Positions 22,961 to 46,445 of a stretch of DNA of 64,000 nt are shown here, piece after piece. Every line of letters starts with the position of its first letter. Within the stretch, counting starts at the first letter, position 1. Under the pieces are notes generated by a model. That model did not search any database. It saw nothing but the letters and a program-made list of their open reading frames with translations, and was not told where the DNA came from. Source of the DNA: Takakia lepidozioides (Eukaryota > Plantae > Bryophyta); contig CM060731.1 in assembly GCA_030704615.1 (NCBI GenBank), positions 69,130,001 through 69,194,000 on the forward strand, given 5' to 3'. A program made the position numbers and the translations under genes.

Positions 22961-23058
22961 AATGGCAATTTCAGCCCCTGAAATTGGCTATGGGTGAACC
23001 AATCATTCCCCTGCCAAATGATTTTGGATTGATTTGAAACTTTGCGAGTGTCTTGTAC

Positions 23059-23081
23059 GGGGGATGCTATTGTGTGAGCAG
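23059..23081 (+). repeat. Left TIR of MULE
   Basis: Imperfect inverted match to 49140-49162, followed by GAGCAG and GATGAATG subterminal motifs mirrored at the right end. Confidence 0.75.
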
Positions 23082-25006
23082 ATCCCACGAGCAGAAAATT
23101 GCATGAGCAGAAATCTGCTCACGCTTGAGGACCTGCCTACCTATAACCGCAGACGTCCAGTCGACTTAGAAGACCTATTACTGCGCAGAGTGGCCAGTAT
23201 CAGAAGGTCGGATATGGATGTTGCTTGGATGAATGAGGGATGAATGTCGGATGAATGTCTGTGTAACAAATGAGAGGTGGATGAATGACATAAATGAAAG
23301 ATTAGATAGTTGTTTGTAGTGGTAGCTCCCAAAAGCTCGGAGATGCATGAAACCATACTTGTCTTGCTTGAAAATCAATTATGTCGGGTGCAATGTATAT
23401 TGCAAACTTTGAGTCCACATTGCTTTGTTGATTGAGAAGGACCACATGTCATTTTCCCAGTTATACAACATTAATAGAGAGGATCACATCCAATCATGAA
23501 GAGGCAAACATGTGAACTCTTGGTTTTTAAACAAACCCTTCAAAAGAATCGATTCATTCGGACAAAGAAGATCCACTGCTACAGGACGCACTGTTCAGGA
23601 CGAAGGCAGACTGTCCACAAAGACACTAGCCCTGCTCTGCTGAAAACCATGTCTTTCGTGTAGCAGAGAAGGTGGAGATGTCAGTAGACTATACTCCTTA
23701 GCCGCAACCTCCGCATAAGCTGGCAAATGAAATTGTGCTGGAGGACTTGGAAAAAAATCCGGGTTGGCAAATAAGGGCAGAAACCATGGCATCATAGGAC
23801 TCCGTCAACCACACAGTAATGAGTAAAATTGGTAAATACTTTGGAAGCCAAACTGCAGCCAAACAAAGGAGCACCAAAAGGATCCGTCATGGGGTCTATG
23901 AGTTGCCACAAAAGAACATGCACTTACTCACATGAAAAATCCGAATCCACATCCAGAGCATCCGGCTCTTGCAGATCCTCCTCCTCAACAATCTTCTCAG
24001 TCTGGGTCGAATGCGAGGATCCCTCAGAGAGTGGAGCGATGACTCGAGAGTAAAGCTCCTCGTCCCCCTCAAACCCAAAAAGATGTCTTCCTGCACACTT
24101 GCAGGCATGGAACGAAGCCCCTATAGGATAGCGAATGAAAGCACGAAACCATGTCAGAAGCCAAAACAGGAGAGGAACATGTGCAACGAAGAATGAAGAA
24201 GAGTTTCGGCATGCACCTGTGCCCATGGAGAGGTCAACGACTTTGCCACCATGCCGGCTGCATGTCTCAATGAAGGTCTGCATGAACACGGGCGACTTCT
24301 CCCAGGCACCTCTCCATGGAATTCCTCCAGTCTTTTTCAGAGTCTAGGACGCATCCACATAGTTGTGAACAACATCAGATTCGACTGGGTCGCAATCTGG
24401 GTCTATGTGCAGACCTCCTCCCCAAATGTCGAAATGCCCAACATAAGCAGGAATGTTGGCAGGCCGAATTCATGACAGGCAAATGGCCTTGAACACATGG
24501 GTCTGCACCAGCAACAATGGAAATATGTCAGCAAGTATGGGTATTCAACGACAACACGGACGAAGACAAATGAAAGTTACAAGAAATACCTTTTGCCCTG
24601 GAAACTCCCCCTTCGACAGAGGCAGTGTATTAACACATGTCCATATTTTGTTGATTTGGAACCCAGAGGACTTCATGTAGCTATGAAGAATCCGGCGGGA
24701 TGCCATGTCGTCAGATTGAAATATCAGAAGGCCCCCTGCGTCAGAGAGGAACTTGTTGCAGAAAGAGAATGCCCACTGCCAATACAGAGGATTTTGAGCA
24801 TTCCACTGTGGAGTCACAGCAGGGGAAATGATATCAAGCATAGGCTGCCCATCCGGGATGTCAAGGATTACAAGGTCAGCGGCGTAAGGCTGCTGGACAC
24901 CGTTCACCCAGCATGGATTCTACGTCACCTGCCAAAAGCAAATGCAAGCGAATGAAATTGGGTAGTTGGTATACATTTAGGGAACTGGTAGTACAAAGCA
25001 CTGGTG

Positions 25007-26390
25007 GATTAAGATGTCGTTGACGACATCTTAATCGAGCAAATCCAAAACCCCACAATGTCATGAAATGGGAATCAAAGTTGAAAGATGCATGGGCATT
25101 ACCAGGGTGAGGAAAGAGCAGAGGTGGTCCCATGCAGGAGATTTGACCCCTGTGAATGTGGACTTCCTGGACTCCATCATACGTAGGAAGCTAACGTTTG
25201 CCGTTTCCGTTGGAACTGCGGACCCACTACTCTGGAGACGCAAAGTCGGGCTTCGTAAGGTCGTTTCCCTGCCCTGTGGTTAGTCCTTTCATCAGCTATC
25301 ACGGAAATCTGCTGGACCTCTGTACGCACAATGCGATAATCTGCCTATGGGTGATCAAGAACTGCCCCACCAGTCCCTGCAGGCCCTGACCCAGAATCAA
25401 CGGCAGCCATAGCACCGGCAGACCCACCTGCCTCCGCAGTCTGTTTCCCTTTGTTTTTCTTCTTCCCACCCGCGGGGGTGGACGTCTTTGCTGGCTCCTT
25501 CTTACTCAGCTGCGCAAGGAACCTAGCCTGCAACTCCTCATCTGTCCAGGGTGCCAAGGCATCTGCATTCTCATTCTGATTCCTCAAGACGTTCTCCTCC
25601 CACGGAGTGGACTGCCGAGGGCAATCGAGGTACCACCCGCAGTCGCTGTAATGTGCCCGACCCCAGTCCTTCACAATTCCCGCTGTGAACATGGTGGTGT
25701 CGTCGTCTGGGTTTGCCCATCCACGAATAAAGTCCGGATCATCACTGAGAGCCTTATCTGGAATAAGAACGAAGTGAAAGTACCTGCATCCACACCAGTG
25801 TTCTTACTCAAAGCATATATCCCCACAGACCACAAGAACTCACCTGTTCACTGCATATTTGCATACTACACCTTAAGATGTCATTGACGACATCTTAAAA
25901 TCCAGGAACTTGAAGAGAAATTGAAGAGATACAGAACAACAGAAAACAGACATGCTCAACTGAACTATTTCCGAGAGCCCAAAGAACAGCCATTTAAGAT
26001 GTCGTCAACGCCATCTTAAATCAACCACTAACACCATGCGGGCGAGCCCGAATCCTTTCTTCCAAAAGTCCTCGGAGTACCTGTTCCAACGCACATGGTA
26101 TTTTTTCGTTGTCTGACGAAAAATGACTTGCTGGACTACAAAAGGATGCCTATTACGACCTCTTAAATTGCAGGAAGCACAACAAAAGAATGAAGACCTG
26201 CAGATGAACAAGAAACAGATGTGCAACTGTACAGTTTTGAAGAGCCCAAAGGGCACCGATTTAAGGTGTCGTCAACGCCACCTTAAATCGACCTAGTTCA
26301 TACATCGAATTCTTTGTGTTAGTACCGAAAAATTGCTATTTGCACTACAAACAATGCCTGTTTTAAGATGTCGTCAACGACATCGTAATG
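25007..26390. repeat. Five dispersed copies of the same 30-bp palindrome (two more at 29818 and 29932)
   Basis: Copies at about 25007, 25871, 25992, 26259 and 26361, all lying between inferred exons of the accessory gene. Confidence 0.9.
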
Positions 26391-28188
26391 TAGTGCCATC
26401 AACATAAAAGGCAGTACATGTACAGAACTCGTTTCATTGCCTGCTCCCTGTTATACTGATGGTCAAAGTCCTGCGAGCGCAGTATCCCCCCTTCCTTCTC
26501 GAACTCACGGAAAAATGCATACTTCCACAGCTCTCTTCTCCATTTCTGAACGTATGACTGGAACTTGATGCTCGGAGTGGTCATTGTGATCTTGTAGTCC
26601 AGTAGTGATTTCTCAAAAGTATCTATTGCCCGCTTCTCCAGCTGCACAACCATCCGCCACATTTTGAGTTAATCAACATAAGAAACCATGTACTCATTGC
26701 TGGAATAGTCACAATGTTTTTATAGTCTCACCTAGCTCTAGAAGGTCGCTTTGTGCAACCAAGTGTCGAATGCGCAGTCGCTGACAGGTGTCACCACCCC
26801 AGTCTCAGGGTCCTTCATTGGTTTTGGGAAATTGTTTGTATCCCGGATGATTGGATCCGAGTTCCAGATTTCCAGCCACCTCACTTTTTGAGCAGGGTCA
26901 ACCATGGAAATTGAAAGGCGGTGGAGCTTTTCCTGTGTCATCTCTGGCTTAGTGGGCTTGTTCCAGTGGATCCAAACCTGCTCCAGAAACCCCTTTCCCA
27001 ATCCGGGGTCAGCGATTCGGATGTGTTTGTCGAACCCGCTCTTCAGGTTCTTCCTGCACGTATCCATGTCCGCCTTCATTTTTGCCTCCACCCCGTTTGT
27101 CGTTCTCTCATCCTCATCTGTAGTGGCGTAATACTCCAGCTTGGCTCGTTCTCCCACTTCTGCTATTTCTTGCTGTGACACACCCATGTAACCCTCGTGT
27201 CAACAAAACCAAAGCAAAAACATGACATATCCATAATTCAAGAAGAATGGCAGTCCGCACATAAACTCACCGCGTACAAGTAGTCGAGAAACACCTCCCT
27301 TGTCAGGTTGTACCAAGTCTCATTCTTCTTGATCGTTTGGCACTTTTTCAGTGTGTCCGGGGACGAGACACTGGCAAATGCTTCCAATGGCATCACTCCT
27401 ATGCTTTGCATACAAAACAAGGAATGGACTATGTTGGTGGTGACATGGGATGTCTCCGTCCCCCTGCAATGCGAACAGGTCAGTTCACAAAGTTTAAAGA
27501 TTGACAGAACAATGAAATTGGAGACAAGAAGTGGGCAAGACTCTTACTTGTTGATATCGTGCATTGCAGTTAGAAGCTGCGTGAACTTCCCCTCCGGATC
27601 GAGGACCATTGACTGAACCCGATAGTGCCACTCTTTGTTCTCCGCATACATCCTGCTGATGTACTCCATCCAGGCCACCAAATGGTGGTTGCCATCCCAG
27701 ACAAAGAGCATTTTGTTCATGTACTGGATGTGTGCTGGGTTCTGTGAAAGCTCAATCTCAAACTCCGTATTCACTTCTTTCCAAAGCGGGTCCCAACTGT
27801 CCATTACATCGAGGTCAATCAATTTCTCAGATCCCTGGAGATCAGTCAGTGACACGTAAAACACAGTCGAACCCTTCAATTACCCATGGATAAAATCCCC
27901 CTGTAGCTTCTTGATGTCGTGGTGAAGGGCAGGCCGAACTGCTGGCATAGAAATCATCCGGCACAGAGGAATGAAAAGAGTGCCGTCTTTCACTTCCATG
28001 GAGTTGATACTTTCCTCGAGTTCACCTTGGTGGTGTACATAAGAGAGTGCACCTTGGCTTCATAGTTGGCATCCACAACAACGTCCCTGTCTTCAAGAAC
28101 AACTGTTTCCTCTGCAGGCTGGCTTCCCCCGGCTTTCTTTCTCTTTTTCTGCAAAATGCAATGTGTTAGGACACACAAATCATGGCAC

Positions 28189-29385
28189 GATTAAGATGTC
28201 ATCAACGACAGCTTAATTTGCTGTTATTCCAGGGTGATTTCCCAATGTTTGAGGGTCAATGCAGTTGTAGATTAAGGTGTCGTTGACGACATCTTAATTT
28301 GTTGTAGTTCTAGAGTGTTTCAGAGTGCTTCAGTGTTTCAGAGTGATTTTCTCATGTTTTGGGTTCAATTCATTGGAGATTAAGATGTCGTCAACGACAT
28401 CTTAATCTGCTATAGTTGTAGGGTGATTTTCTCATGTTTTGAACTGAATGCAGGAGCAGATTAAGATGTCGTCAACGCCACCTTAATCTGCTGTAGTTGT
28501 AGGGTGTTTTTTGGATGTTTTATGTTGAATTCATTGGCAGATTAAGATGTCGTCAACGACAGCTTAATCGGCTGTTTTTCAAGGGTGATTTCCCCATGTT
28601 TGAGGTTCAATGCAGTGGCAGATTAAGGTCTCGTTGACGACATCTTAATCTGCTATAGTTCTAGTATGCTCCAGAGTGATTTTCTGATGTTTTGGGTTCA
28701 CATAATTGGAGATTAAGATGTCGTTAACGACATCTTAATGTGCTACAGTTGTAGGGTGTTTTTCTCATATATTGGACTGAATGCAGAAGCAGATTAAGAT
28801 GTCGTCAACGCCACCTTAATCTGCTGTAGTTGTAGGGTGTTTTTTGGATGTTGTAAGATCAATTCATTGGCAAATTAAGATGTCGTCAACGACAGCTTAA
28901 TCGGCTGTTTTCCTAGAATGATTTCCCCATGTTTGAGGTTGACTGCAGTGGCAGATTAAGCTGTTGTTGACGACAGCTTAATCTGCTGTAGTTGTAGACT
29001 GTTTCTCCCATGTTTGTTTTGATTGCAGAGGCAGATTAAGGTGTCGTTGACGACACCTTAATCTGCTGTAGTACTAGACTGTTTTGCCCATGTTTTGGGT
29101 TCAACTCATTGGTAGATTAAAATGTCGTCAACAACACCTTAATCTGCTATAGTTCTAGGGTGTTTTGCCAATATTTTGGTTCAATGGGGAGGCAGATTAA
29201 GATGTCGTCAACGACATCTTAATTTGCTATTTTTCAAGGTGATTTCCCCATTTTCGAAGTTGAATGCAGTGGCAGATTAAGCTATCGTCAACGACAGCTT
29301 AATCTGTTGTAATTCTTGGGTGTTTTCTCCATGTTTTTGATAGAACATAGGGGTAGATTAAGGTGTCGTCAACGACACCTTAATC
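28189..29385. repeat. Array of 15 x 30-bp palindromes in an about 81-bp period, inside an inferred intron
   Basis: GATTAAGVTGTCGT(CA/TG)ACGACABCTTAATC starting at 28189, 28270, 28378, 28459, 28540, 28621, 28711, 28792, 28873, 28954, 29034, 29115, 29195, 29275 and 29356. Confidence 0.95.
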
Positions 29386-31069
29386 TTCCTTCACTTTAAT
29401 CTTCCTAAGTAAACCTTTACCCGCAAAGGTGACCTTTTAGGTAGCATTATCGACACCTCAATCTAACTCCTTTATGTTGCAAAGACCATGGATTCGAATG
29501 TATGAACTAATCTTCTCTGGCTTCGTTCCTCCGCTGGAAGACCCGCCCCCCACTGCACGCCTTCTGCCTTGCACCTGACTCTTCTCCTTCACGGATTGCG
29601 GAGGCACTTGTGTGTTTTTCTCCTGCCCCTCAATGCCTGTGACCTGTCGTGGACACTGCATTATTTGCACCTCCTCCTCCTGAGCGACATGACCCTGCTC
29701 TGGCAGGGTCTGCTCTTGAACTGCAGGATCCACAGATGAGATCGGACGCTGACTCTCCCAAGCCTTCTTCCACTTTCTCTACCAAAAAACATAATGAAGG
29801 TAAGCATTGCAGGCCCAGATTAAGGTGTCGTCAACGCCATCTTAATCCTATACATATTGCAGGCTGTTGCACTCATACAGAGACAACATTGGGCTCGCTA
29901 GAACTAAGAGCTCTGCCTCTCGGAGATGGCAGATTAAGCTGTCGTCAACGACAGCTTAATCACCTTGCTCTGGACTTGTTCGAATCCCTTCCGAATGCAA
30001 TGGTGGACATGATGCGATGCCGTTTTAAGCAATCGTCAAAGTCATCTTCAACTCAAATGTATGTTTCTTACTGCTCTTCTTATCGCTTCGAGTCAGGGAA
30101 CAAAGTCATGTAAAGCCAATGTGCTGCTGAACTCACCTGGATCAAACTCTGTCCACCGCTGGAAGTGTCCTCCTCTCCCAGCCCGACGTTGCTTTCCGCT
30201 TGAGCCTTCTCCTTCAACGGGCGCAAAGACAGTTGCATGGAGGAGGGCCGCCCCCTTGTCGGCAGGCCCCTCTGCGGACTTTGCTGCGTTGCCTCCTCCT
30301 CCGCAGGATCACCGCTCTCCCTTCCGACTTCCTCCTCCTGTATCGGTTGCAATAGAGGCAGCTCCAACCGATCCTCGAGTTGCTTGTCCAGAATGGGCTC
30401 CTTCCCTGCCAGACTCTCCATCCCTTCGCCCACAGAACCCTCCCCCTCACGATCGCTCCCTCCCTCTGACAAATTCAAAGCCCTCCCAGCTTTCTTCATC
30501 CTCTCTCTCGCTCTCAATCTCTGCCTAGCAGACGTGAAGTACAGAGACTGCCTTCTCGCTCTCTTCTTTCTGGAAACGCTCTCGTTCTTGGGATGCTCCA
30601 ATGTGGCGAGTCTGAAATGATGAACGCCAGAATGTAACCTCCAAAGACATCCCTCGGGCAAATGACAAAAATCGATGGCGGTTAGGTTTTCATCCCTCCC
30701 TCTCAAGGAATGACTAATCATCCAAAAACGTAACGGCTCATAATTGGGGTTTTCATTTTTCGGCGGGATGCTTGCGGGCTGTCTCGTAGAGAACTCGACA
30801 CCTGTTGCCCTTGCAAGACACTTAAATATAGGCATGTCACGTATCCATGTTAGACATAAGGGGTTCGACCCACACCGCAGTCACTGAGGATGTGGCATCT
30901 GCAAGTCGGCCGCAATTCTTGCATGTCAGAATCATGTGTCCGGCGGTCTATGATATGACATTCATGGGATAAAATTCAGCAGTATCTGTCAGAGTCAAAG
31001 CCGACTACTAAACAACATGCAAAGAAATAATTTGCCTCAGCACCTTCACTCGGTGGATCCACTGAGACA

Positions 31070-34000
31070 TTGTCAGGAAATGGTTCCACGAATTCGGCCT
31101 TCCTGGTGTACTCTTGTCACCTGCTCTCCATTGCCCACACTCCCGTGCTCGTTCATGCAATGTCTCTCAACTCCGACGTCGCTGTTTTCTACTCCAACGC
31201 GCAAGCGGAGTACCTGAGTGCAGTAGCCGACGTGAATGGGCTCGCCGTAGTTCAAGAAGACTTGCTTTGCGTGACCTTTTGCTTTGAGGCAGGGACTATA
31301 CATGTAGTGAGAGAGGTGTATGACAAAGTGGGTAAGGTCAAGGGCACATGCGTTCAGAAACCACATTTGTCTGGCAGTCGGCGAGAGTGGAGAGTTCCAC
31401 CAGCAAAGTATCGCGTTCATGGGGATCAAAGACGTCTGTCGGGAGGTTCCATAGTCACGTCCAGAACAGCAGCTTCGGTGGCTCAGGTGCCCAAAACTCT
31501 GCCCATCAAAAGAGAAGAGACAACCTCCACCACATTTGTTGATATCTCCTATAGCTCAGAAGAGGACGTGTCGGAGCTCCCACCTCCTCCGAATCAACGT
31601 CTGTTGGGGGACCCCGATGTGCAAGAAATTGCAAGTGCCATACCGAAGTTGCAGTCCTTGAGGGGGTTGCCAGGATACAAGAGTGATGTGAGAGGCATTG
31701 ACTGGGATACACAGCGAATCGTTAGAGCAAAATACCTACCCAATGAATTTAACGGTGATATCATTTTTGAGCTGCCACCAGCGACATCCTCTGGGGGATT
31801 GGCAGGACGAATGGCGGGCATGGACAAGAAGCACGATGGACATCCATGGTGTCGGACAAAAACTTCCAATATATGCAATCCGCATGGCTTGAAGTTCCGT
31901 AGGTCGATTTGCGTTGGACACATTCGTTGTCCAAATGCATTTTGCCAGCAATTCCAAATGGACGGTTCGGCAAACGAGACAGAATGGGAAGGTGTCAACG
32001 ACAACCCTTTCAAAGTAGGTTGTGCTCCTGCAAGCAGTAGTACTCTTGTTTGCAATATCTGTAAATTGGTCCCACGGTGCATCGCAGATTGCAATGCACG
32101 TATGTACTACGTGCTTCACAATTGCAGTTACCTCACAAAGGCATGTATCCATATCGGCATTCATGCACATCCGGTGTCCCGAGGACAGTGCAGAGAGACA
32201 ATTGATACAGTCCGTTCACTGCTTCAACACGAAATTCATAGTGCTCCTGGTGCATCGCCATCAGCCATTGCTCTGGCAACAAGCAAAGGATTCCTACAAA
32301 AGTATTTGTTTGGGGAATCGCCGGAGTCCACCACTAAATTTGACACTGCCTCCCTTGACGATGTTCTGGACCATTTCTCAACATTCAGTTCTCCGAATGT
32401 GCGAAATCAAATCAACGTCCTAAGGGGGGGTGCTGCCAACACAGGCTTTATGGATAGCATCCTGGAGTTAAAACGTATAAGCCGATATGAATTCATCAGG
32501 ACAGTGTTTTCCCGGGGCAAGGTGCCAGGAAAGTGTACTTATTCAAGATGTCCACAGTTGGTGAGGGATCGGGAGTTAGTCTTGTGCGAAGAATGCAGCC
32601 TGGTGGTGATCTTCACAAATCCTGGGTTATGTTTGATCACGTGAAACGTGTGAAGGAATGGATGACCATGGCCTATCATGTATACGATCCTGCATACCTG
32701 AGAGTGATGACTGTTGCTATTTGTGACATGCAATCAGATGACACAGAGTCACAAATTCTTATGTGGAAGTCCCTTGTTAACGTCGTGACAGCTCATGGTG
32801 TCCCAGATCCAAACTTCACTGGGTTCATGGCTGACAGTGCTCAAGCGAATTGGAATGCTGTCCGTACAGTTTTTGGTTCAAGCGACCCCGAAGTACCAAT
32901 GGAAGGCCGGGAACGCACTTGCCTCTTTCATTGGAGCCAGTCCCTACAACGCCACACAAAAAGTTCCATAAAACTGGAGTTGCGGGAGGAGCATATGAGA
33001 CTATGCCGTTTGTATAAAGATGCCACCTCCCGAACAGGAAGCCAACTCTATGTTCCAGACTATTCGAGAATGGTGGTACACATCTGAGGCAGCCAGTCTG
33101 GATGGAATCAAAGAACTGGAAGGCTGGTTGGGGTTCTGGCACTTCAAATATAGATAGTGGGGTGCCTTCATGACAACTGTAAGTTATTAGCGAATTAGCA
33201 TGATTTTCCTTTATTCCTTCTCGTCGGAAGATATATCATGGAACGAACAGGCCCTCCAATCCAGTTCTTATGTTGCTGTACGTAATCATGCTTGTGTTGA
33301 ATTGCATGCAGAACATGTCACTGGAGGACATTGCCGATATGCCCTCCTGCAATCTAGCGGAGACTGTGCATAGTCAGTGGATAGCACAATCCGGCAAAAA
33401 AGGGAGGAACCTCTACGTTGCGACTGCAGATGACATGCCGGGCTGTTTCGCAACAAACAAGGTACCGAGACTTCCTGAGGGGAGGGGGAGCTGGCAAAGG
33501 TCCAGACAGGGAAGAGTTGCTACTCAGGGCTGCAAAATGGCGCGTGCTGTGAATGAGTTCACAAATGGAACACCTTTGCAGTCCAGGCTCCCACATCTGG
33601 AAGGGGAGGAAAGATTCGGTTCATGCAAGCGCAAACTTGACACCCCCACCGGATCCGCTGGTGGCTCCCATCGGCATGACAGGATAATTACTCAATTCCT
33701 TGTGTGCCTGTGCGGCCTCCGACATTCGAATCTGGCAATCCCTCTGTCGGCGCCTGTTCTTCTGCTGTATAGAATGCTTCATATCCCTCTGCTCCAGTGC
33801 GGGGAGAGGGAGAGATGATGCTGGCGGTGGAAGAGTCCGATTGTGTGGATGCAATATGGCACATTGAACGGACAGCCCAAGGATCAAAAGTTGGGTGTTC
33901 TGCACTTAGGGCATTGTCCTTTGTGAAATTCACCAGCAAGATTTCTAGGGGCGGAGGTGGGACTCTTGCCCCGTCTTTCACTGGTTTATTCAGACATTAC

Positions 34001-34414
34001 GGTGCGCGAGAGTCCAGGCCTCACAAGTTCTGGTTTTGCCCTGATGACATTCAGCGTTGTGTGATGGGGACTTGCAGGGATTCAGTCCTCAGCAAGCCTC
34101 AAATTCCAGCCGTGTGGCCAGTGAAGTTGGGAACATGTCTGTCGAAGCAAGAAATTGAGATGTTGGAGGATGCCAAGTTTCGTCTTCCAAGAGGCCCAGT
34201 AGTCATAACACCAGTTTCATGTCGGGGTTCGCAATCCGCATTCCCCCCACATCCACCATATGGGAACGACTGGCCTACAAAACGAAATGGAAACCGGTCC
34301 GTCGTGTTGAGGCAGGTCCCAAAAATGATTGCAAAATTGAGTCAGCAAGAAACCTGCAGTGTCGGAGGACCCAAGTTGTTAATGTCCCCCCTCCAGGCTA
34401 TGGGCGGGTGTACA
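31070..34414 (+). pseudogene. MULE transposase, 5' part (GCM/WRKY-like Zn domain + DDE core); frameshifted, intron 33179-33311
   Basis: HPWCRTKTSN..RRSICVGHIRCPNAFC..CNIC..CNARMYY..IHIGIHAHP; WVMFDHVKR (D1); FMADSAQANWNAVRTVF (D2); RTCLFHWSQSL (CxxH); SCNLAETVHSQW (E). Confidence 0.8.
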
Positions 34415-35330
34415 TGTTAGAGGGCTGCTTGGGACTTAGACGCTTTTATGGGTTCTGTGGGGTACCCTTAATTTTGCGCAGACTGAGACAACAGGAGCCT
34501 TAGGGGTGGCAGCAGGCAGGCTTTAGGGGGTATACAGCCTGACACAGCCCGACACAGCTTTACACAGCCAGTCATAGCCAGTCACAGACCGCCACAGCTT
34601 CGCACAGCCCGACACAGCCCGAAATAGCTTTACACAGCCAGTCATAGCCAGTCACAGCCAGTCATAGCCAGTCACAGCCAGTCACAGCTCGGCACAGCTT
34701 GACACAGCCTGTCACAGTACATGGGGAACAGTTATCATTGACAGGGAATGACTGTGAGGGAACGACATCTGAAGAGGGAACGTGTTACTCAGGGATGACG
34801 GTTAGTTAGTTAGGTGGTTAGAACAGTTTGCGGGCAGATAAGGAGAGCGGCAACGGAAAGAGGATGACTTCACGGGGAGCGCTTTTGGGTCATGGGAAGA
34901 GGAGATCAGGCGGAGGGCAAGAACGAGAGCACAGAGAAGGAGGAAAGATGAACAGTAGATGCTTATTACATGCAGAGCTGTAGTGATACTGTAGGGCGGA
35001 TTAGAGTCACCATGGCATTGGCCTGATACCTGATAAATCATAATCTGATATTTATTCGATACAATCACACTGTGTAGAGAGACATGAGTGAAGCTGTGAA
35101 ATGAATGCATGATAACTGGAACTAAGTAGATACTGAAGCGTATCAAAAAGGTTAAATTGATAACATGAAGGCAAGAAGGAATACAAATGGGAAGCACAAC
35201 CATGATTCACTAGCTGCAGGTATGACTCTGATAGTACTGGCGGGCTGAGTGCTTAGAGATATCCAACTCTTCATCTTGGAGTTTCCACCTCGGATTAGCG
35301 AAGGGATGGGTGAGTAAAAGCCGTTCGACA
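34415..35330 (+). repeat. 5' LTR copy A, containing 10-bp CACAGCC-type tandem repeats
   Basis: TG..CA boundaries; homologous to 46446-47389 and 55023-55975. Confidence 0.95.
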
Positions 35331-35350
35331 TTGGCGAACCATACTGGGAC
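35331..35350 (+). promoter_or_regulatory. Primer binding site (tRNA-Arg-like)
   Basis: TTGGCGAACCATACTGGGAC directly after the LTR; copy B has TGGCGACCATACTGGGGA at 55978-55995. Confidence 0.65.
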
Positions 35351-35938
35351 CTGGGTCATGAACAACCAGATGTGACAGGCATCTGGTAGGATCATGGTGG
35401 TTGGAGAATTAAAGAATATTATGTGAATCAAATTCCCTGTGAAACTGAGAAGGAAAGATTGTCCAAACAATTCTTTCAGGGGTTTCTGAATTGCCAGACG
35501 GTTGTAAGGAAAACATTCTTAAGAGAGTGCATGATGCTGACCCTGAGTGCGGTCTGGAGAAAGGAGTGATAAGATTTATCAAGTGGCCAGTAGAGGAAGA
35601 GCACGTTGGTTACCAACACTGGTTTATGTGATAGCGTTGCTATCCATTAAGCGAGTAGAGTAGAGTTGATGAGGCTGGGAGGAAAGGAAGGTGAATGTTT
35701 ATACTCATATGCATTGAAGAGCTTGTACTGGTAAAGAATTGGATTCCACAAGGATATTCTGTGGATCAAACCACACCAAGAACAGCTTTCCAGACTGTTT
35801 GCCATATGGTTATATGGTAACGGAGATTCTAGTATAGCCAAGGTGCATTGAAGCTTGAAAGAAACCCAGGCACATACACGAGAGATACTACAAAAGAGAG
35901 TTTTGTTATTGCCATTAAAGAAATGAAAGACATGGGAC

Positions 35939-38900
35939 ATGAGTGATGAAAGGAAGCTAGACCCCAGAGATATTCAGCAAAAAGAGAAAGTTATCTGAAA
36001 GCTAATTATCCATATCTTTGGGAGAGAGGAATAGACATAGGGGAATCATCTGGACCTCTCACACATTAAGATCAAAGAGTACATCACCATACCGAAAGAA
36101 CTAGAGTTGGATGCCACTCCTTCTTTTTCTTTGCAAGAAAGATTAAGGGAATTGGTACTGGAAGACAAATCAACCACAAGTTGAAAGATCTGAGGTACTC
36201 CTTGGATAAAAGATTTGACAAAAATCTTTGATAAGAGTTGGCATGGAAACACCAAAAGCAGGAAACTCCAGTTTCTGAGACGGAAGATGAAGAAGGAGGA
36301 GGAGAGGATGTGCAAAGCCAACGGAGAGTTCAGACTCTCCAACACCATTGCAGTTGAGTTACATGAGTGAAGAGAAGCCAAAGGGCAGAACTTGAGGATG
36401 AAAAACAGAGAGAAGAAATTGGAAGAGGAAGAGTCTGAAGAAGTAGACCCAACAGCTGAGGTTGAGACTACAACCAGGACATTTCAACCCGTTGGACCTG
36501 AATCAAGTGGAGCACTTGGATCACAGGCCAACGAAGGTGTCGGCTCAGGCGGGCAGCCTGGATCTGGCTTTGGGAGGACAGGGAAGTGTGGGAAGTAGTA
36601 GTGCAAATGGAGTGGGAATACTGTGGAATATCGTGGGGCCAGTAGCAGGGAGTGCTCAGGGGCCACAACTTGGTGGAAGTCACCCAACTACAACAGGTCC
36701 TCAAGGACCAGCACCAACAAGGGGGCCAGAATCTGTCAGTGGGCAGAAGAGAATGGTAGCCACAGATGGCGTTACAACCAACACGGGCAAAACCACCTTT
36801 TCCAATATATTCAGGAAAAGGGATCCTGATGTACACATTAGCCAATTTGAGCACATGTGTATTGTGAACAATGAGAATGGCGATGATGCCAAGATGAGAC
36901 TGTTTCCTTGTTCACTTATCAAGAAAGCAAGTGAATGGTATGCAAGATTCCCTGATAATCATTTCCTAACCTGGAATGGCTTGAATACAACATTCCAAAT
37001 AGGTTCAGGACAAGTAAAACTGAGGATGAAGTGTATGGAAGTTTACAACAGTTAAAGCAAAAGAAGCATGAAACTGTTGAGGAGTATATGGAAAAGATGG
37101 AATTGATGATGAAAAAGCTGGCTGCTGTACCAGCACCAGGTTTACAGAAGACTTGGTTTGTGAGTGGACTAAGACCAGAGTTGCAAAAGAAAGTGGATAT
37201 GTTACCCCATAATACAGTGGAGGAGGCATTTGAAACAGCGAACAGAATTGAGCAATTGGAATGCTCAGGAGAGAGAAAAGGGATGATGAGGACTCTGAGG
37301 ATGAGTCAGATGAGGAAGAAGAGCAAGAGCTGAAAAAGAAGAGTAAGAGGAAGGAGAAGTTGAAGAGGGATAACTATGAGAAAAGATTAGAAGAAATCTT
37401 GAAGAAGTATGCCACAGAGGCTGCAACACATTGGAGGAAGGGTGTTTGGTGTGCAAAGTGCCAGAATGAAGGCCATACCACCACTGAATGCCACATGAAG
37501 GAGAAACACTGTACTATCTGTAAAATGGATAACCATTCTACTGAGAATTGTTACTACAACAGAAGGACAGCAGCTAGAGAACCTAGGCAAGTAAGGGTGC
37601 ATCAAGTGCAGCCCCAGCCAAGAAGAAACAGTGATCAGGACCACTATGGTAGGCCTGGTGGTTATAACAATGGCATGGAAGGGAGAGGTAATCAAGAGGG
37701 AATTACCAAGGAAATTCCAGAGGCAACTATCAGGGTAATCCAAGGGGGAATTACCAGCCAGGGAATCAGGATTACAGAAACAATTCCAGAACAGACCAAG
37801 GGCGAGGACCTAATGAAGAACTGTGTTACTATTGTAATCAGGCAGGCCATCGCAAGGCAGCCTGTCCATTTTGGATCAGACACCAGAATGAGATGAGAGC
37901 TCCTGTGAATGAGGGGCCAGTGGTGGCAGCTCACATGGTTAGGCCATGTGTTGTACCAGAAGTAAGTACAATGATAGTAACGAGAAGCAAAGCCAAACTA
38001 ATACCTCCAGTAGATGAGGAAGATGATGATAATGAAGATGGCAGTGATGTGCCTGAAGATGATGAGGCTTGGAGAGATGAGAAGGAACTGCACAAGGAAG
38101 TGGCAGATACCATAAGGGAAATGCAGAAGAGTACTGATATTCCTATGGCAGATTCCTCTGATTCTGAAAGAGAAGAGGAAGTGAGTGAGGATGAAGGGAA
38201 GAAAGAAGCTGCAGACATGCAGAGTAATGAAGGGACTTTGGCTGAAGTAATATGCCAGTCCAAAGCGGAGATTACCATTGGACAGCTATTGGCTGTGGCA
38301 CCTTATTGTAGACACAGGCTGTATCAAGCAATCAATCGAATTGCCCATGTGACAGGGAACACAGACCTGAACAGCAAGGTGACCAGTTATAATGTGAAGC
38401 CGGAAGGGCGAGAAACAGTCATGGACTTTGATGATTCTATGCCAGTAATCCAATTGAGAATTGGAAGCACAGAACTAACTGATGTACTGATAGATGGAGG
38501 CTCTGGAGTGAATATCATGACAGACCAATTAAGGCAGAAGCTTGGTCTAAGTAACATGAAACCAGCCCCATTTACAGTAACAATGGCAGATCAAAGAAGT
38601 GTACAGCCATTGGGATTGATAAGAGGAGTTAAGATACAGATTCAAAAGATGATCTTTATGATCACAGTAACTGTGTTGAAAATGGATGAAGTCATGGAAG
38701 CTTACTCCTTATTGTTGGGACGTCCGTGGCTGAAACAGGCCAGGGTATTCCATGACTGGAATTCCCAGTTACTAACTGTGCATGATGGGATGCACAAGAT
38801 ACAAATTACCACTAAGAAATCTAGTAGATTACCTGCTACGAGAAGACCTCGAGGGGTCAGGGAGTATGACTGGAGGGGAGGACTTGATGAGGAGCAGGAA

Positions 38901-41900
38901 GCTACCCTGTTCGCTGCACACCCAGAGTGGGAGCAGGTTGCAGAGATGCAGCTGGAAGGCCTAAGTTGTTTAAAAGGTATCTGTTGTGGTGTAGTGACAC
39001 AACACCAATTGAAGGTGAAACAAGCAGTTACCCACCACATTTCTATGAAGAAAGAGAGGGAGAAATGGAAATCCTAGAGGAACCAGCCACTGTGAGTTTA
39101 CAGGATGAAGTGGTGACTGGTTGGACAATCACAGCTGAGCAGGTGAGAGAAGTGAATGTGGGAACTGAAGAGGAACCGAGGATGGTGAAGGTAGGGGCTG
39201 ATTTGGAGCCAGAATTCTTTGAGGAAGCTAAGAGTTTGTTCATCAAATACAGAGATGTATTTGCTTGGAGCTACGAGGATCTAAAAGGGATACCACCTGA
39301 GATCTGTCAGCATAAGATTGAACTGGAACCAGGGTCAGTACCAATCAAACAGGCAAGGTACAGAATGAATCCCAACTATGCACAGAAGGTTGGAGAAGAG
39401 ATCAAGAAGTTGGCTGAGGCTAAGTTTATATACCCGATAGAGTATACAACTTGGTTGTCACCCATTGTGATAGTTCCCAAGAAGAATGGTAAACTGAGAG
39501 TGACACTATAAGAAGTTGAATGCTTGCACGAAGAAAGATCATTTCCCCTTGCCATTCACAGAAGCGGTATTGGACACTGTGGCAGGCCATGAGATGTACT
39601 CATTCATGGATGGCTTCAGTGGTTATAATCAAGTGCAAGTGGCAGAAGAAGACCAGGGAAAGACAGCTTTCATCACAGACTGGGGTGCTTATGCATACAA
39701 AGTCATGCCTTTTGGACTTTGTAATGCACCAGCAACCTTTCAGAGAGTGATAAGTGAATCTTTTCATGAGTATCTGGATGATTTCATGCAGGTGTTCTTG
39801 GATGATTTCAGTGTGTACAGCTCTAAGAATGAGCACTTGCATAAATTGGAGTTATGTTTGGCCAGATGCAGGATGAGAGGTCTGGGCCTGAATCCAGAGA
39901 AGTGTACTTTTGTGTGAACTCAGGGGTGCTTTTGGGACACATTGTGTGTAAGAGGGGACTTCTTGTGGATCCCAGGAAGACAGAGGCCATTAAAGCCTCT
40001 CCACCACTAGTAAATGTTAAGAGTCTAAGGAGATTCCTTGGACAAACCAGTTATTACAGAAGATTTGTCAAAAGGTATGCACAGATAGCAGCACCATTGA
40101 GCAAGCTTCTGAAGAAAGATGCAGTGTTTGCATGGACAGCTGAATGTCAACAGGCTTTTGAGGAACTTACATTGTCAGTAACAACTACACCTGTGCTGAT
40201 TAACCCTCACTGGCATGTAGTATTTCATGTTCACTGTGATGCCTCAGGGGAAGCGTTGGGAGCGGTGTTAGCCCAAAATGTTACAGGAAATATAGATTCA
40301 CCTGTGTACTATGCTAGCAGGTTGATGAACAGTGCTGAAAGGAACTATAGCACAACTGAAAGAGAAGCACTGGCAATGATTTATGCAGTCAAGAAATTCA
40401 GGCATTACCTATTGGGAAGAAAGTTTATGTTTTATGTGGATCACCAGGCTCTGATATATCTGGTGAACAAACCTTTGATAAGTGGAAGGATAGCAAGGTG
40501 GTTAATAATCTTGCACGAGTTTGAGTTCGAAGTTGTTTACAAGCCTGGCCGTTTGCATCTTGTGGCAGATCATTTGTCACGCCTAACAACAGGAGAGCCC
40601 GCCACAGGAGTAGACGACCAATTACCTGATGCGAGTTTATTTGCAATGGAGGTGCAGGGAAGTGCAGATGAATGGTTAGATTGGCAGTGGCCAATCAGAT
40701 ACTACCTTACTCATGGTCAGTGCCCACCTAGTTATGGTAAGGAGCAGAGGAAGAGAATCGCTATCAAGGCTTTACCTTATACTATGGTAGGGGGCAGAAT
40801 GTATAAGCTAGGACCTGATGGAGTACTTAAACGATGCTTGTACCACCATGAAGTAAATAAAGTTTTGGAGGAAGTTCATAAAGGAGTGGCTGGAGGTCAT
40901 TTTGGAGAAGAGACTACCAGTAGGAAGATACTACTTGCAGGTTACTGGTGGCCTACTTTGTTCAAAGATGTACACAAGTATTGTCAGAGTTGTGATGAAT
41001 GTCAGAGGCTAGGACCTTTGCAGAGATCTGGGAAGATGGCTTTGCATCCTACGATGCCTACTGAACCAAGTTACTGATTATACTACGAAGTGGGTGGAAG
41101 CTAAAGCTCTGAGGGACAACACAGCCAAGTCCACAGCAAGGTTCCTGTATGAGAACATACTTACACGATTTGGCTGTCCCCTGGAATTTATCAGTGACCA
41201 GGGAAGTCACTTCATTAATGAGACCATTGAACTATTGACTAAAGAGTTCATGATTGTGCATAGGAAGAGTACAACATATTACCCACAGGGTAATGGGCAG
41301 GCAGAGGCTACCAACAAAATACTATGTACTATCTTGGCTAAGATAGTCAATGCAAACAGAACGGATTGGGATACAAAGCTGCTGACAGCTTTGTGGTCAT
41401 ACATGACTTCATATAAAGTCACCACTAAGTATACACCATTCCAATTAGTTTATGGTATGGAAGCTTTACTTCCAGTGGAATTCTTGTTACCTACCATGAG
41501 AACTGAATGGGGAAAGAGAATGGAATTGAAGATTCAATTAAGGTCAGGAAACATGAATTATACCATGTGGAAGAAGTACGTGCTGATGCAGCTGATAACA
41601 TGACCAGAATTCAGATGAAGAGGAAGGAACAGTTTGATGAAGGCAAATTAAAGACTTTTAAGACGAGAGATTTGGTTCTCTGGTTGCAGAAGAAGGGGAA
41701 GATTAAAGCTTCTAAGCTTAAATCACCATGGAAAGGACCTTATGTCATACAGAAGATGTATGATAACAACACCGCCATGTTACAAACCATTAACAAAGAG
41801 ATGCTGGGAAGAGTCAATGCCAATAAGTTGAAGGGGTACAGTGGTATCCATGACAAACCATTGCAGCACGATTTGCATGTTGAAACGCAAAAGCAGTCAC

Positions 41901-42055
41901 GGGCTGCGCCAGTGATACCAACGGAGTATGGAGCACTTGTCGTTAAGCCGAGCGTGTATGACCAAGGCGGGAAGTACAAGTGTCACACAACCTATCACAA
42001 CCCATCACATTGTCACACAGCCTATCACAGCCCATCACAGCCCATCACAGCGTGA
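35939..42055 (+). pseudogene. gag-pol: gag-pol of copy A (frameshifted)
   Basis: Three CCHC knuckles; PR LIDGGSG; RT FMDGFSGYNQ, MPFGLCNAPATFQR, FLDDF; RH CDAS..YSTTEREAL; IN GGHFG..CDECQR, SDQGSHF, YPQGNGQAE, WKGPY. Confidence 0.93.
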
Positions 42056-42657
42056 CACAGCCTATCACAGCCCACCACAGTGCCACACAGCCTGTCACAG
42101 CCCAACACACCCATACAGATTACACAGTCCATAGGGTCAGTGACAGGTGGACGCGAATTAACGTTAGAAAAGTGGCCATCAAGTGAAGAGGAAGTTTGGA
42201 AGTCAAACTTGGAGAATATGCACGCGGAGAGGGGAAGTCGGGGCATGTTTTGAAACAGACACGTGGCCACTAAGGCGTGGCACACCGCACTGCATCAATT
42301 GCAAAAAAAGGTCTCATCATGCAAACGGACAAATCGGGCCGTCAAAGTACCTACCCGGTACAGCAGCTAATACTAATTGTGGGCCCATTAATGCATTCAG
42401 TGTAAGGGTAACGGAACCAACCTATGCCACATGTGCTGTCCTACTGGACATTCCAGGTGGGAATGTCCATGGAGGGGGGTGGAATTAAGAAATTACCTAA
42501 GCAGTCCACAGCCAATCAGGAGTGCGAATTACATGCAGGTGGTTCCCTCCAAGAAACAAGAACAAGAAATAGGAAGTGTTATGAGCGGAAGAGTCGGGGT
42601 GGCTCTGAATAGCCAAGGTCTCGACGGAAGGGGCAATCAAAGCACTAGTTTGTAGCT

Positions 42658-45600: not shown

Positions 45601-46406
45601 TGAAGCAGCTACCATGTTGAAGGAATTAATTGCCTTCCAAGTTGTACATGGGTACATTTATACCAAGACCAAGGAGGTATCAAGTATTGTCATGGGATGT
45701 GGATTATACTATGCTGCTTGTTTTCTGGCACGTTATCACATTGAGCAGCAGAGGATGCAATCCCGATTTCTGAGTTATTCCAGTGGGGATCATTGGGTCT
45801 TACCTTCAGTGCCACCTCATATGTACCTATATGATGCAGAAGGATTCCCAACTTCGTTCATGGTTTCATTCGGCTTGGAACAATTTGACAACACAGAAAT
45901 TCGGCCCTGAGGATATTTTCTTTAAGGGACATGAGGCATGGAAATACTTACACTGTTCCAAAGTCATCGGCACACCTCTTACCTATACAGATAAGGAGTT
46001 GAGGACGTTCACTAATTTTGCTTGTCAGCGCTTACAGCAAGTTGTACAATTTAAACTTCCAGATATGGTCGGACCACATTGTATGCCACACAGGATTCCA
46101 CTTAAAGTTTGGCCGTTAAAACACCTAAGGGGAGACGAGGATTCTCATACTACTGTTTCTTCAGCGGACTCTTTTGACATGGCAGAGGACTATGCACTTC
46201 AGATGGCAGAGAAGAAACGACGGGGATCTCCTATGCCTGAGAGGTTACCTCGTTATCAGCCAAAGGAGGGTCAGACATTTCCAGGTAGTGCTCAATCATC
46301 TCCATCAACCAATGACAGGACTCAGGCTCGCACACGGAGTCCTTCACGAGACTCTCACCGTCAGAAGGGTGCTCGCTCACAAAGGTTTGCTAATCCCAAA
46401 CAGTAA
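42658..46406 (+). CDS. Extra sense ORF(s) between pol and the 3' LTR: Athila-like plant transposon domain, acidic linker, coiled coil
   Basis: ORFs 42658-44325, 44366-45256 and 45260-45910 are in the same frame, separated by single stops; 45783-46406 follows. Motif IQFLQNF..QVRGVDIEITPQYLQQLFDLP..VAWAELMY. Heptad-rich segment at 44270-45170. Confidence 0.6.
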
Positions 46407-46427
46407 ACCGTTAGGACACGGCTTTTT

Positions 46428-46441: not shown

Positions 46442-46445
46442 TAAA

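Follow-up and report, generated by a model that had tools for sequence, protein, structure and literature searches.

The window, that is, the whole 64-kb stretch of Takakia lepidozioides DNA analysed here, contains a Mutator-like transposon (MULE) of ~13 kb that occupies positions 23059-49162 together with a Ty3 retrotransposon nested inside it. Within this element, a tandem array of palindromes occupies non-coding sequence flanked by the transposase gene and by an accessory gene in divergent orientation. We first describe the element and its two genes, then the palindromes and those of related elements, and finally the ways in which they may be explained.

The transposon and its two genes

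The left end of the element consists of a 10-bp target duplication, TGTCTTGTAC (23049-23058), and a terminal inverted repeat beginning GGGGGATGCTATTGTGTGAGCAG... (together 23049-23090, + strand). At the right end, the terminal inverted repeat (reverse complement GAGGGCAGCTACCGTGTGAGCAG...) is followed by the other copy of the duplication (49163-49172; together 49131-49172, - strand). The two copies of TGTCTTGTAC match perfectly, and their length lies within the 8-11 bp by which MULEs are recognized. The terminal inverted repeats are imperfect, ~30 bp long, and begin G(G/A)GGG..GCTA..GTGTGAGCAG.

The MULE-like transposase coding region runs on the + strand from 31187 to 34414, where it is broken by the nested insertion, and its 3' remainder follows at 47395-47649 (+ strand). 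The insertion itself (34415-47389, + strand) is a Ty3-type LTR retrotransposon with TG..CA ends and a 5-bp target duplication, GTACA; it is no part of the palindrome system. The Pfam MULE family (PF10551) was not detected in the open reading frames of the window or in the orthologous transposase of L003, a related element. A language-model search placed that orthologue among PF10551 clusters (all ten best, score 0.95-0.85), and the SWIM domain was found in its C-terminal open reading frame with 21.2 bits against a Pfam cut-off of 19.6. When DNA contigs of the organism were aligned to the locus, the element proved to be highly repeated, the depth per bin being no copy number. The whole array is missing from some genomic copies, with 28166 joined to 29357 in four of four runs.

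The accessory gene lies on the - strand. Its first conserved exon (27544-28150) encodes a ParB/Srx-like N-domain with the motif DGNHH, which is DGNHR in the relatives, and the remaining coding blocks span 24167-27465 (27268-27465, 26726-27190, 26408-26650, 25474-25785, 25100-25207, 24545-24907 and 24167-24442). The first exon is broken in this copy by a frameshift near 28008 and a stop at 27880-27882, both absent from other genomic copies among the organism's contigs. The gene is thus a pseudogene here, and any function at this locus must act in trans from intact copies. Because the 5' edge of the exon resembles a splice acceptor (ttttgcag/A), a 5' intron of the accessory gene probably contains the array.

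The ParB-like exon was recognized by its fold alone: Pfam scans of the exon and its relatives returned no ParB match, nor did profile searches of the N-domain against PDB sequences. An AF2 model of the exon has a pLDDT of 91.7, and by VIA-align it superposes best on Myxococcus ParB (Z 9.1; 89 residues at an rmsd of 2.0 A), with Caulobacter ParB, Noc, KorB, PadC and sulfiredoxin next in order; the ParB entries matched are 7bnk and 7bm8. Along with the predicted ParB/Srx fold goes its motif of the Gly-x-x-Arg type, DGNHR being nearly invariant among 52 relatives. The 80 residues after the N-domain are modelled with a pLDDT of 38-70, confidence being low past residue 165, and gave no sequence match to solved ParB chains. 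The accessory protein also contains SHVxxNxVHxL, which we presume to be comparable to the ParB recognition helix. A protein word-index search with the third exon (26738-27187) found no match.

Toward the C-terminus, methyltransferase-like motifs can be seen in two coding blocks: a motif IV-like DIPD in 24545-24907 and a motif I-like VVDLSMGTG in 24167-24442. Pfam N6_N4_Mtase is matched at 5e-5 with 23.7 bits by P0160, a Riccia homologue of 1207 aa, and the Riccia homologues together score 23.7-26.2, just below the curated cut-off of 26.7 bits. Motif IV departs from the canonical form (DIPD here, DLPT in Riccia), and it is doubtful that the domain is catalytically competent. The accessory gene combines a ParB/Srx-like N-domain, predicted from its fold, with a C-terminal domain bearing N6/N4 DNA-methyltransferase-like motifs. 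No ParA-type ATPase family was found among the long open reading frames of the element that were scanned, a non-exhaustive set.

The palindromes and their variation

The array (28186-29388, no strand assigned) consists of 15 units, each containing a 36-bp palindrome, GCAGATTAAGVTGTCGT-YR-ACGACABCTTAATCTGC. This is longer than the 26-bp core, TTAAGVTGTCGT-YR-ACGACABCTTAA, by the outer ends GCAGA...TCTGC. The 15 copies of the core fall within 28191-29383 and start at 28191, 28272, 28380, 28461, 28542, 28623, 28713, 28794, 28875, 28956, 29036, 29117, 29197, 29277 and 29358; shuffled sequence contains no match to the motif. The successive periods are 81, 108, 81, 81, 81, 90, 81, 81, 81, 80, 81, 80, 80 and 81 bp. 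This recount agrees with the original prediction of 15 repeats at a period of 80-81 bp with one exception of 90 and one of 108. The exceptions had been put down to duplication of a 9-nt unit, and indeed the extra 27 and 9 nt occur at a single linker site, as micro-duplications of a unit of ~9 nt resembling (A)GAGTGNTTC.

The linkers had been called variable in sequence but constrained in length, as in a CRISPR array. They are in fact alignable from end to end, with a mean pairwise identity of 0.685, and the array contains a higher-order repeat of 333 bp (28334-28633 versus 28667-28966, 91%). Nor can the constrained length by itself be taken as a sign of selection on spacing, since unequal crossing-over gives a fixed unit length in any tandem repeat. 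Periods near 80 bp recur: 81 and 79 bp in this element, 81 bp in a second element of the window, 84 bp (2 x 42) in L003 and 81 bp in the related locus L001. A general rule of ~80 bp was rejected, as periods of 127, 66, 53 and 211 bp are also found among the loci.

The window holds 28 palindromes, all of them inside the element and in stretches without conserved coding blocks, where none would be expected by chance. One (25009-25034) is in the inferred intron between coding blocks 25100-25207 and 24545-24907 of the accessory gene, and four dispersed ones (25873, 25994, 26261 and 26363; 25873-26388) are between blocks 26408-26650 and 25474-25785. Two more (29820-29959) are found between the accessory and transposase genes. 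Six others form a second cluster (47795-48489) on the 3' side of the transposase coding region, with spacings of 131, 79, 79, 128 and 252 bp, and three of these are in a 79-bp tandem repeat. The second cluster has the same 26-bp core as the array, with unrelated linkers and with the flanks GGAA/TCCC; overall, three clusters of the element with unrelated linkers or flanks have retained one core. An element at 62.2 kb, the second to bear palindromes, has the half-site CGCCGATTTTCCATCC no more than ~30 bp from what appears to be its end.

When the units are aligned, the best-conserved block of 36 columns is the palindrome itself. Mean pairwise identity is 0.85 in the palindrome versus 0.685 in the linker, and mismatch to the consensus is 9.3% versus 21% (Fisher 7e-8, inflated like all such values here because the array copies share ancestry and are not independent). 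The palindrome is thus better conserved than the linker, as had been claimed. Both CpGs of the arm are retained in 52 of the 56 half-sites, and the observed/expected CpG ratio reaches 1.96 for the palindromes, as compared with 0.13 for the linkers and 0.58 for the remainder of the element.

The retention of CpGs is compatible with anti-silencing of the VANC type, of which it is no test.

Symmetric variation at one position of the arm had also been described. The copies named as A..T, C..G and G..C are located where they were said to be, but such copies are not significantly more frequent than chance allows: the position is symmetric in 14 of the 28 copies in the window (10.5 expected, p = 0.09) and in 7 of the 15 in the array (5.0 expected, p = 0.19). 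Arm covariation, which had been proposed for testing over all genomic copies, was not significant within the array. At the variable position all 56 half-sites have A, G or C and none has T, each half varying independently of the other. Every one of the remaining 15 arm changes is one-sided, and one of these variants, ACGCCA, is present in five copies. Because the halves vary independently, the other changes are one-sided and one-sided variants persist, recognition of half-sites is favoured over base pairing.

Related elements and comparable systems

Collinear relatives of the element were found by tblastx: L003, L001, L004 (Riccia, a liverwort) and L005 (Adiantum, a fern). In all five loci, the window included, the accessory gene is divergent to the transposase gene, and each relative has a recurrent palindrome of its own at the corresponding places. 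That of L003 is ATCAACCTTGCGT-YR-ACGCAAGGTTGAT (29 half-site matches versus 0.5 expected); its sites form an array 3' of the transposase gene, three lie upstream of the ParB exon, and the others are mostly in the same inferred intron as the four dispersed palindromes of the window (26408-26650 / 25474-25785). The palindromes of L005, L004 and L001 are AGAGCCCCTGCGT-TG-ACGCAGGGCTCT, ATTCCGGCGAG-N-CTCGCCGGAAT and CCAAATTAACAAAA...TTTTGTTAATTTGG, respectively, and that of a further locus, L006, is CGTTCN6GAACG. The palindromes are private: the motif of the window has no match in any of nine loci (9/9), and the L003 motif occurs in the window at chance level. The half-sites of the window and L003 are identical at 8 of 13 positions, with the differences symmetric in both arms, and the three closest families have a CGT-YR-ACG centre in common. 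Inverted-repeat clusters adjoin the ParB-like gene in all six loci with enough upstream sequence (the window, L001 and L003-L006); L009 has too little and was left out of this count. Because the transposase and accessory genes co-occur in every relative examined, co-variation cannot decide which protein is the reader.

Among bacterial systems, sites bound by ParB-family proteins include parS, the operators of RK2 KorB, and sopC of the F plasmid, which consists of tandem 43-bp repeats, each with an inverted repeat bound by SopB. As in the window, dyad-symmetric sites recur next to a gene for a ParB-fold protein, with a regular period in the array. The system in the window differs in being eukaryotic and spliced, in having no ParA-type partner that we could see, in its longer half-sites (12-13 bp) and in that its helix-turn-helix is only putative. 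A role in segregation is implausible for a chromosomal transposon.

Another parallel is found in red algae. In the giant Plavaka transposons of Bostrychia moritziana (Petroll et al. 2025, bioRxiv 10.1101/2025.02.11.637652), tandem inverted-repeat arrays adjoin ParB-like accessory genes, and homologous accessory genes are stated to exist in Mutator elements of Chondrus crispus. Across different transposon superfamilies of red algae, such arrays follow the ParB-like gene. The authors propose, as we do, that one of the proteins, PAG3, binds and modifies its own element. PAG3 resembles the product of the window gene in being encoded in a DNA transposon beside inverted-repeat arrays and in having at its N-terminus a ParB-like domain, fused to one that modifies nucleic acids. 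PAG3, however, has a 2OG-dependent oxygenase as its second domain, with the methyltransferase encoded by another gene, PAG2, whereas the window gene has ParB-like and methyltransferase-like motifs together; the hosts differ as well, a red alga and EnSpm/Plavaka elements as opposed to a MULE with relatives in the liverwort Riccia and in Adiantum ferns. Both hallmarks of the red and brown algal systems are thus present here, namely the ParB-like domain joined to a modifying-type domain inside a DNA transposon and the adjoining family-specific inverted repeats.

Likeness by architecture extends to Sola1-1_Ec32 of Ectocarpus, which has an accessory protein with ParB-like and DNA methyltransferase domains opposite the transposase (PMC12477816), and to the ParB-HTH-Dam fusions of chlorophytes and chytrids (Iyer et al. 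2016, PMC4738411); the idea of a ParB-like domain with an N4C/N6A methyltransferase is common to these and the window. Sola1-1_Ec32 is also a large element with the gene on the strand opposite the transposase. In contrast to the window, it belongs to another superfamily (Sola1) and has no cognate palindrome arrays reported, while the non-canonical motif IV is that of the protein described here (DIPD in the window, DLPT in Riccia).

In Arabidopsis, VANC (VANDAL elements) and TnpA (Spm) bring about sequence-specific anti-silencing via clusters of motifs (PMC5735166, PMC10398659, 10.64898/2026.08.24.746577). As in the window, these motifs are short, specific to a family, and repeated in tandem within upstream regions and introns of the element's genes; density gives specificity, motif and family diverge together, and arrays gain or lose units between copies. 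The VANC motifs, however, are 8-9 bp, in one orientation and non-palindromic, and their readers are unrelated to ParB. In those systems the effect, a loss of 5mC, has been demonstrated, whereas any such effect in the window is hypothetical.

A candidate array of binding sites and the alternatives

We favor the view, with a probability of roughly 0.55, that the palindromes are a dyad-symmetric candidate binding-site array of the MULE, read by a protein that the element itself encodes, the ParB-like protein being the prime candidate. Each palindrome would comprise two half-sites of 12-13 bp, (A)TTAAGVTGTCGT, around a YR centre, amplified in tandem into a cluster. The element-encoded protein, with the ParB-like accessory protein the foremost possibility, would bind each palindrome as a dimer, and the dense local sites would allow the element's own copies to be recognized in a family-specific way. 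Once bound, the protein could autoregulate the two divergent genes, or it could modify or protect the chromatin or DNA of the element (self-marking, anti-silencing). On this evidence the array most likely serves as a landing pad, through which a protein of the element recognizes the element's own copies, and we infer that the logic would be like that of the VANC/TnpA motif clusters and of the plasmid ParB-parS, SopB-sopC and KorB-operator systems. The original prediction had offered selection on either a dimeric-protein binding site or a hairpin/cruciform. Its first half is supported, on grounds other than those it gave, as a putative binding site by the core in three clusters, the CpG retention and the family-specific replacement; base pairing is disfavored by the one-sided variants.

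The palindromes might instead be sites of the MULE transposase itself, acting as regulator or anti-silencer of its own element, with some other role for the ParB-like protein. We regard this as unlikely, though as the likeliest of the alternatives. The transposase gene adjoins palindromes in five of five collinear loci, one cluster being always just 3' of it and one in the shared upstream region, and the half-site of the 62.2-kb element is near its apparent end, where transposases bind. Further, according to a 2026 preprint (10.64898/2026.08.24.746577), AtMu1 transposase causes cognate copies to lose methylation in a sequence-specific manner. Against it, neither the terminal inverted repeats nor the terminal or subterminal motifs GAGCAG and GGATGAATG clearly resemble the half-site, the element ends lie 0.7-2 kb or more away from the palindromes, and the red-algal arrays follow the ParB-like gene rather than any one transposon superfamily. 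A factor of the host (a transcription factor, silencing protein or insulator protein) whose sites the element has accumulated would also suit dense clusters in a divergent upstream region. Since each related family has a different palindrome, which a conserved host factor would hardly explain and which fits a co-evolving element-encoded reader, we give this very little weight, slightly less than a purely structural role. In the latter, the palindrome would act as a DNA cruciform or hairpin (in replication, recombination or as a transposition intermediate) or as a small-RNA hairpin. Single strands do form hairpins of 14-16 bp (-8 to -17 kcal/mol, z-scores -4 to -10.5), and an intronic array would probably be transcribed. 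Such stems are short for Dicer substrates, however, and their stability differs two-fold among copies; no Rfam family matches, and compensatory change is confined to the variable position, itself mismatched in 14 of the 28 copies. These points make a structural role quite improbable.

Two explanations remain. A neutral minisatellite could arise by unequal crossing-over, its apparent conservation coming from shared ancestry or from self-correction of the palindrome (intrastrand hairpin repair, gene conversion). The mutual homology of the linkers, the 333-bp repeat, the copies without an array, which indicate a dynamic array length, and the lack of significant symmetry within the array would all suit it. 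It is nevertheless improbable: the same core stands in three clusters with unrelated flanks, the arm CpGs persist (52/56) beside CpG-free linkers, the relatives have different palindromes at conserved positions, and self-correction predicts symmetric variants, whereas one-sided ones persist in several copies. The earlier judgement that this is not a neutral minisatellite is supported by the first three of these observations. A CRISPR array, finally, has practically no standing. The locus resembles one superficially, in that a palindromic repeat is conserved and recurs with regular spacing, but linkers 68.5% identical to one another are not unique spacers, and this refutes it. The locus belongs to a eukaryotic DNA transposon that has introns, is flanked by target duplications and contains nested LTR retrotransposons, and Pfam scans of the open reading frames in the window found nothing cas-like. 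The label 'CRISPR-looking' was accordingly wrong.

Returning to the element-encoded reader, a more specific and rather improbable version, somewhat below the transposase in our estimation, is that land-plant MULEs carry a ParB-parS-like module. A ParB-fold protein, possibly gated by CTP, would load at private arrays, spread, and deliver an activity of the DNA amino-methyltransferase type or block cytosine methylation. If true, each transposon family would have a self-addressed epigenetic mark with co-evolving reader and site, and the centre, always GTYRAC, would be a candidate target of modification.

How transposons recognize themselves and escape silencing is known mechanistically for just a few families in Arabidopsis and maize. 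A second, unrelated type of reader with bacterial ancestry (ParB-like plus methyltransferase-like), associated with long dyad sites in arrays, was proposed in 2025 for algae only. Judged by sequence, the same architecture is present in land-plant MULEs, including those of the liverwort Riccia and Adiantum ferns, and there is clear family-specific replacement of the putative sites among this locus and its relatives. Together they supply defined oligonucleotides and proteins for binding and methylome work.

The palindromes and what is conserved in them

With up to three mismatches allowed, the 64-kb window contains 28 matches to the pattern TTAAGNTGTCGTYRACGACANCTTAA; 100 shuffled versions contain none. 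Fifteen of these matches make up the array (28191-29383), where start-to-start spacings are 81, 108, 81, 81, 81, 90, 81, 81, 81, 80, 81, 80, 80 and 81 bp and Tandem Repeats Finder reports periods of 81, 161 and 333 bp. This geometry agrees with the original prediction, as do the 27-nt and 9-nt extras, which share one point in the linker and are micro-duplications of a ~9-nt unit. Within the array the dyad reaches 36 bp (GCAGATTAAG...CTTAATCTGC). The linkers had been called variable in sequence; when the units are aligned with MAFFT, they prove mutually homologous (consensus TGTAGTTCTAGGGTGATTTTCCCATGTTTT.GGTTCAATGCAGTG; mean pairwise identity 0.685). Given this homology and a setting within a eukaryotic DNA transposon, the analogy to CRISPR was dropped. 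Contigs in each of the four DNA runs go straight from 28166 to 29357 except for 23 other letters, so in some genomic copies of the element one palindrome takes the place of the 15-unit array of the window copy.

As had been proposed, the palindrome is better conserved than the linker: mean pairwise identity over its 36 bp is 0.85, and of all 36-column blocks in the circular unit it is the best conserved. Mismatches to the column consensus amount to 9.3% in the palindrome vs 21% in the linker (Fisher 7e-8, indicative only because the copies share ancestry, with a 333-bp higher-order repeat pairing 28334-28633 and 28667-28966 at 91% identity). The 26-bp core also occurs in three settings outside the array, with unrelated flanks. 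Pattern matching places one palindrome at 25009, four dispersed at 25873-26388, two at 29820-29959 and six at 47795-48489, three of the last within a 79-bp tandem repeat, with linkers entirely different from those of the array. The window holds 60 half-site matches (~0.6 expected by chance), nearly all of them paired; isolated half-sites are rare.

Symmetric arm variants, also part of the original prediction, do exist, but not significantly in excess of chance: the sixth half-site base varies symmetrically in 14 of the window's 28 copies vs 10.5 expected (permutation, p = 0.09), and in 7 of 15 vs 5.0 expected in the array (p = 0.19). The argument from covariation within the array should be dropped. 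All 15 other departures from the arm consensus are one-sided, and one variant, ACGCCA, is kept in five copies. More telling than the symmetric variants are a variable base that is A, G or C in 56 of 56 half-sites, never T, and an invariant YR centre (CA 15, TG 12, TA 1), so that all 28 copies read GTYRAC centrally. GTYRAC is the recognition sequence of HincII/HindII, whose methyltransferase produces 6mA; we offer this as no more than a lead. The two arm CpGs are intact in 52 of 56 half-sites, and the array linkers contain 4 CpGs vs 30 expected (o/e 0.13; rest of the element, 0.58). Such retention in a CpG-depleted repeat points to selection on the CpGs or protection from methylation, and the composition of the founding unit explains part of the contrast.

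The host transposon and its ParB-like gene

Eukaryotic and rich in repeats, the window contains ORFs for Ty3 gag, protease, RNase H and integrase; a single DNA transposon holds all 28 palindromes. Its imperfect terminal inverted repeats start at 23059 (GGGGGATGCTATTGTGTGAGCAG) and 49162 (reverse complement GAGGGCAGCTACCGTGTGAGCAG), with a perfect 10-bp target duplication (TGTCTTGTAC) on their outer sides. The palindrome bears no relation to the subterminal motifs (GAGCAG, GGATGAATG). Without a nested Ty3-type LTR retrotransposon (34415-47389, 5-bp GTACA duplication) the element measures ~13.1 kb. The LTRs of the nested element are 91% alike overall and 97% in blocks, and at ~55.0 kb another copy begins with a related LTR (55010-55975; 56584 onward). 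Micro-arrays of a 10-bp unit, (CACAGCCNNN)n, with 13-19 units each (34534-34717, 41986-42118, 46568-46761 and 55145-55304), sit in LTRs and once in the Ty3 body. Elsewhere, an ORF at 17465-18526 matches Pfam DUF659 (2.7e-26), found in relatives of hAT-type transposases.

Two plus-strand stretches, 31187-34414 and 47395-47649, encode the transposase. Pfam detects no catalytic domain in the window ORFs or in the orthologous ORF of a relative; a language-model search places that orthologue among MULE (PF10551) clusters with scores of 0.95-0.85, and a SWIM finger in the relative's C-terminal ORF passes the Pfam cut-off.

The accessory gene, with several exons, occupies the minus strand from ~28150 to 24167. 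The first conserved exon starts at ttttgcag|A, which resembles a splice acceptor, ~40 bp from the first palindrome, so the array probably lies inside a 5' intron of this gene. The window copy is a pseudogene, with a 1-bp frameshift near 28008 and an in-frame stop at 27880-27882; contigs of other copies from the same organism read intact at both places, with an extra G at ~28008 and G for T at 27880-27882. The exon encodes FVWDGNHH, where relatives have DGNHR, and the His at 27700 replaces the family's conserved Arg. A word-index search followed by a profile search of 1.84 billion representatives returned 1023 relatives of this exon (503 at E <= 1e-10). Most are exon fragments; among the others are annotated proteins from Riccia sorocarpa, a liverwort, and from two ferns, Adiantum nelumboides and A. 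capillus-veneris.

Sequence profiles give no link between the N-domain and ParB. An AlphaFold2 model of this domain from 52 sequences (pLDDT 91.7) has top structural matches that are all ParB/Srx proteins, so a ParB N-domain fold is supported at the level of the model; the best VIA-align match is Myxococcus ParB (Z 9.1, rmsd 2.0 A over 89 residues), followed by Caulobacter ParB, Noc, KorB, PadC and sulfiredoxin. A further model, of low confidence beyond the N-domain, and a comparison with the sequences of solved ParB proteins did not bring out a DNA-reading helix-turn-helix in the stretch that follows. The Riccia homologue (1207 aa) has the same N-domain, and its C-terminus just misses the Pfam N6_N4_Mtase cut-off (5e-5, 23.7 bits; cut-off 26.7 bits), with methyltransferase-like motifs at residues 949-981 and 1112-1162. 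The last exons in the window (24545-24907 and 24167-24442) encode DIPD, which resembles motif IV, and VVDLSMGTG, which resembles motif I. The DxxxGxG of motif I is preserved, and motif IV is DIPD in the window and DLPT in Riccia, not (D/N/S)PP(Y/F/W); the domain may therefore not be an active amino-methyltransferase.

Related elements with other palindromes

Contig L003, which encodes a relative of the accessory gene, is collinear with the window element in tblastx over the transposase (50-70% identity) and six accessory-gene coding blocks. The window motif is absent from L003, and the L003 motif occurs in the window at chance level only. The L003 half-site, ATCAACCTTGCGT, has 29 matches vs 0.5 expected and forms ~13 palindromes with the 13 + 2 + 13 geometry of the window. 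It agrees with the window half-site (ATTAAGATGTCGT) at 8 of 13 positions, with the same differences in both arms; all 16 L003 copies examined for their centre have YR there, hence GTYRAC in each. An array with a 42-bp period directly 3' of the transposase is the counterpart of the window cluster at 47795-48489, and three sites upstream of the ParB exon are the counterpart of the window array. Further sites lie downstream of this exon, mostly between the coding blocks that flank the window sites at 25873-26388.

Contigs from Riccia and Adiantum have the divergent gene pair of the window element. In the Riccia contig, ~eight sites of the form ATTCCGGCGAG-N-CTCGCCGGAAT lie between the two genes, and another array of palindromes follows 3' of the gene; in Adiantum, ~nine sites (AGAGCCCCTGCGT-TG-ACGCAGGGCTCT) fall within the initial 2 kb of the gene range. 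Contig L001, collinear in tblastx over the transposase and the first accessory-gene blocks, has the palindrome CCAAATTAACAAAA...TTTTGTTAATTTGG, and a fifth contig, L006, has CGTTCN6GAACG five times upstream. In L001, the palindrome cluster upstream of the ParB-like exon is interrupted by a foldback (MITE-like) insertion at 7030-8280, whose inverted arms measure 160 nt.

Within the window, recurrent palindromes occur only in two palindrome-bearing elements. The second of these (62225-63230), inserted in the integrase ORF of a Ty3 retrotransposon, has a different, perfect 30-bp palindrome (GGATGGAAATTCGGCGCCGAATTTCCATCC) in arrays with periods of 81 and 53 bp and later ~75-96 bp; the window ends before any gene of this element.

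A candidate reader of the palindrome

Across these elements, symmetry is kept between families, slack within a family is one-sided, the sequences are private and their positions are conserved. A co-evolving dimeric reader would predict this four-part pattern, and the array is most likely a cluster of dyad-symmetric sites for a reader encoded by the element. That it is a neutral repeat is very unlikely: such a repeat does not predict the pattern, and the original rejection of a neutral minisatellite is supported by the family-specific palindromes as well as by the core shared among clusters with unrelated flanks and by the arm CpGs. The array is genuine, and as a cis element of a MULE family it is not neutral. 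A hairpin or cruciform acting by structure alone, which had been offered as an alternative, is also very unlikely. The expected hairpins do form in single-stranded folding, but their stability varies from -8 to -17 kcal/mol between copies, so pairing as such is evidently not maintained; structure alone does not predict the four-part pattern either.

As for which protein would read the sites, the accessory protein is the prime candidate because of its modelled ParB fold, because the element's termini lack the motif and because red-algal inverted-repeat arrays accompany a ParB-like gene through transposon families. The last two points also count against the transposase itself as reader, a less likely assignment, although the transposase is linked to palindromes at every locus and a half-site of the second element lies ~30 bp or less from its apparent end.

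There are precedents for such an arrangement. Experiments on VANC and TnpA show that readers encoded by transposons work through dense motif arrays, specific to each family, that lie in introns and upstream regions (PMC5735166; 10.64898/2026.08.24.746577). ParB-HTH-Dam fusions are described in chlorophytes and chytrids (Iyer et al., PMC4738411), and a survey of Ectocarpus found a 1104-aa ParB-like and DNA-methyltransferase protein opposite a Sola1 transposase, proposing such proteins as a possible new accessory class (PMC12477816). Petroll et al. describe Plavaka accessory genes in red algae, with homologues in Chondrus Mutator elements (bioRxiv 10.1101/2025.02.11.637652). Our literature search found no report of such a system for bryophyte or fern MULEs. 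The red-algal type combines inverted-repeat arrays with a ParB-like gene across transposon families, whereas here the host is a MULE of a land plant; the array would be a member, in a land plant and in a MULE, of the kind proposed for algae in 2025.
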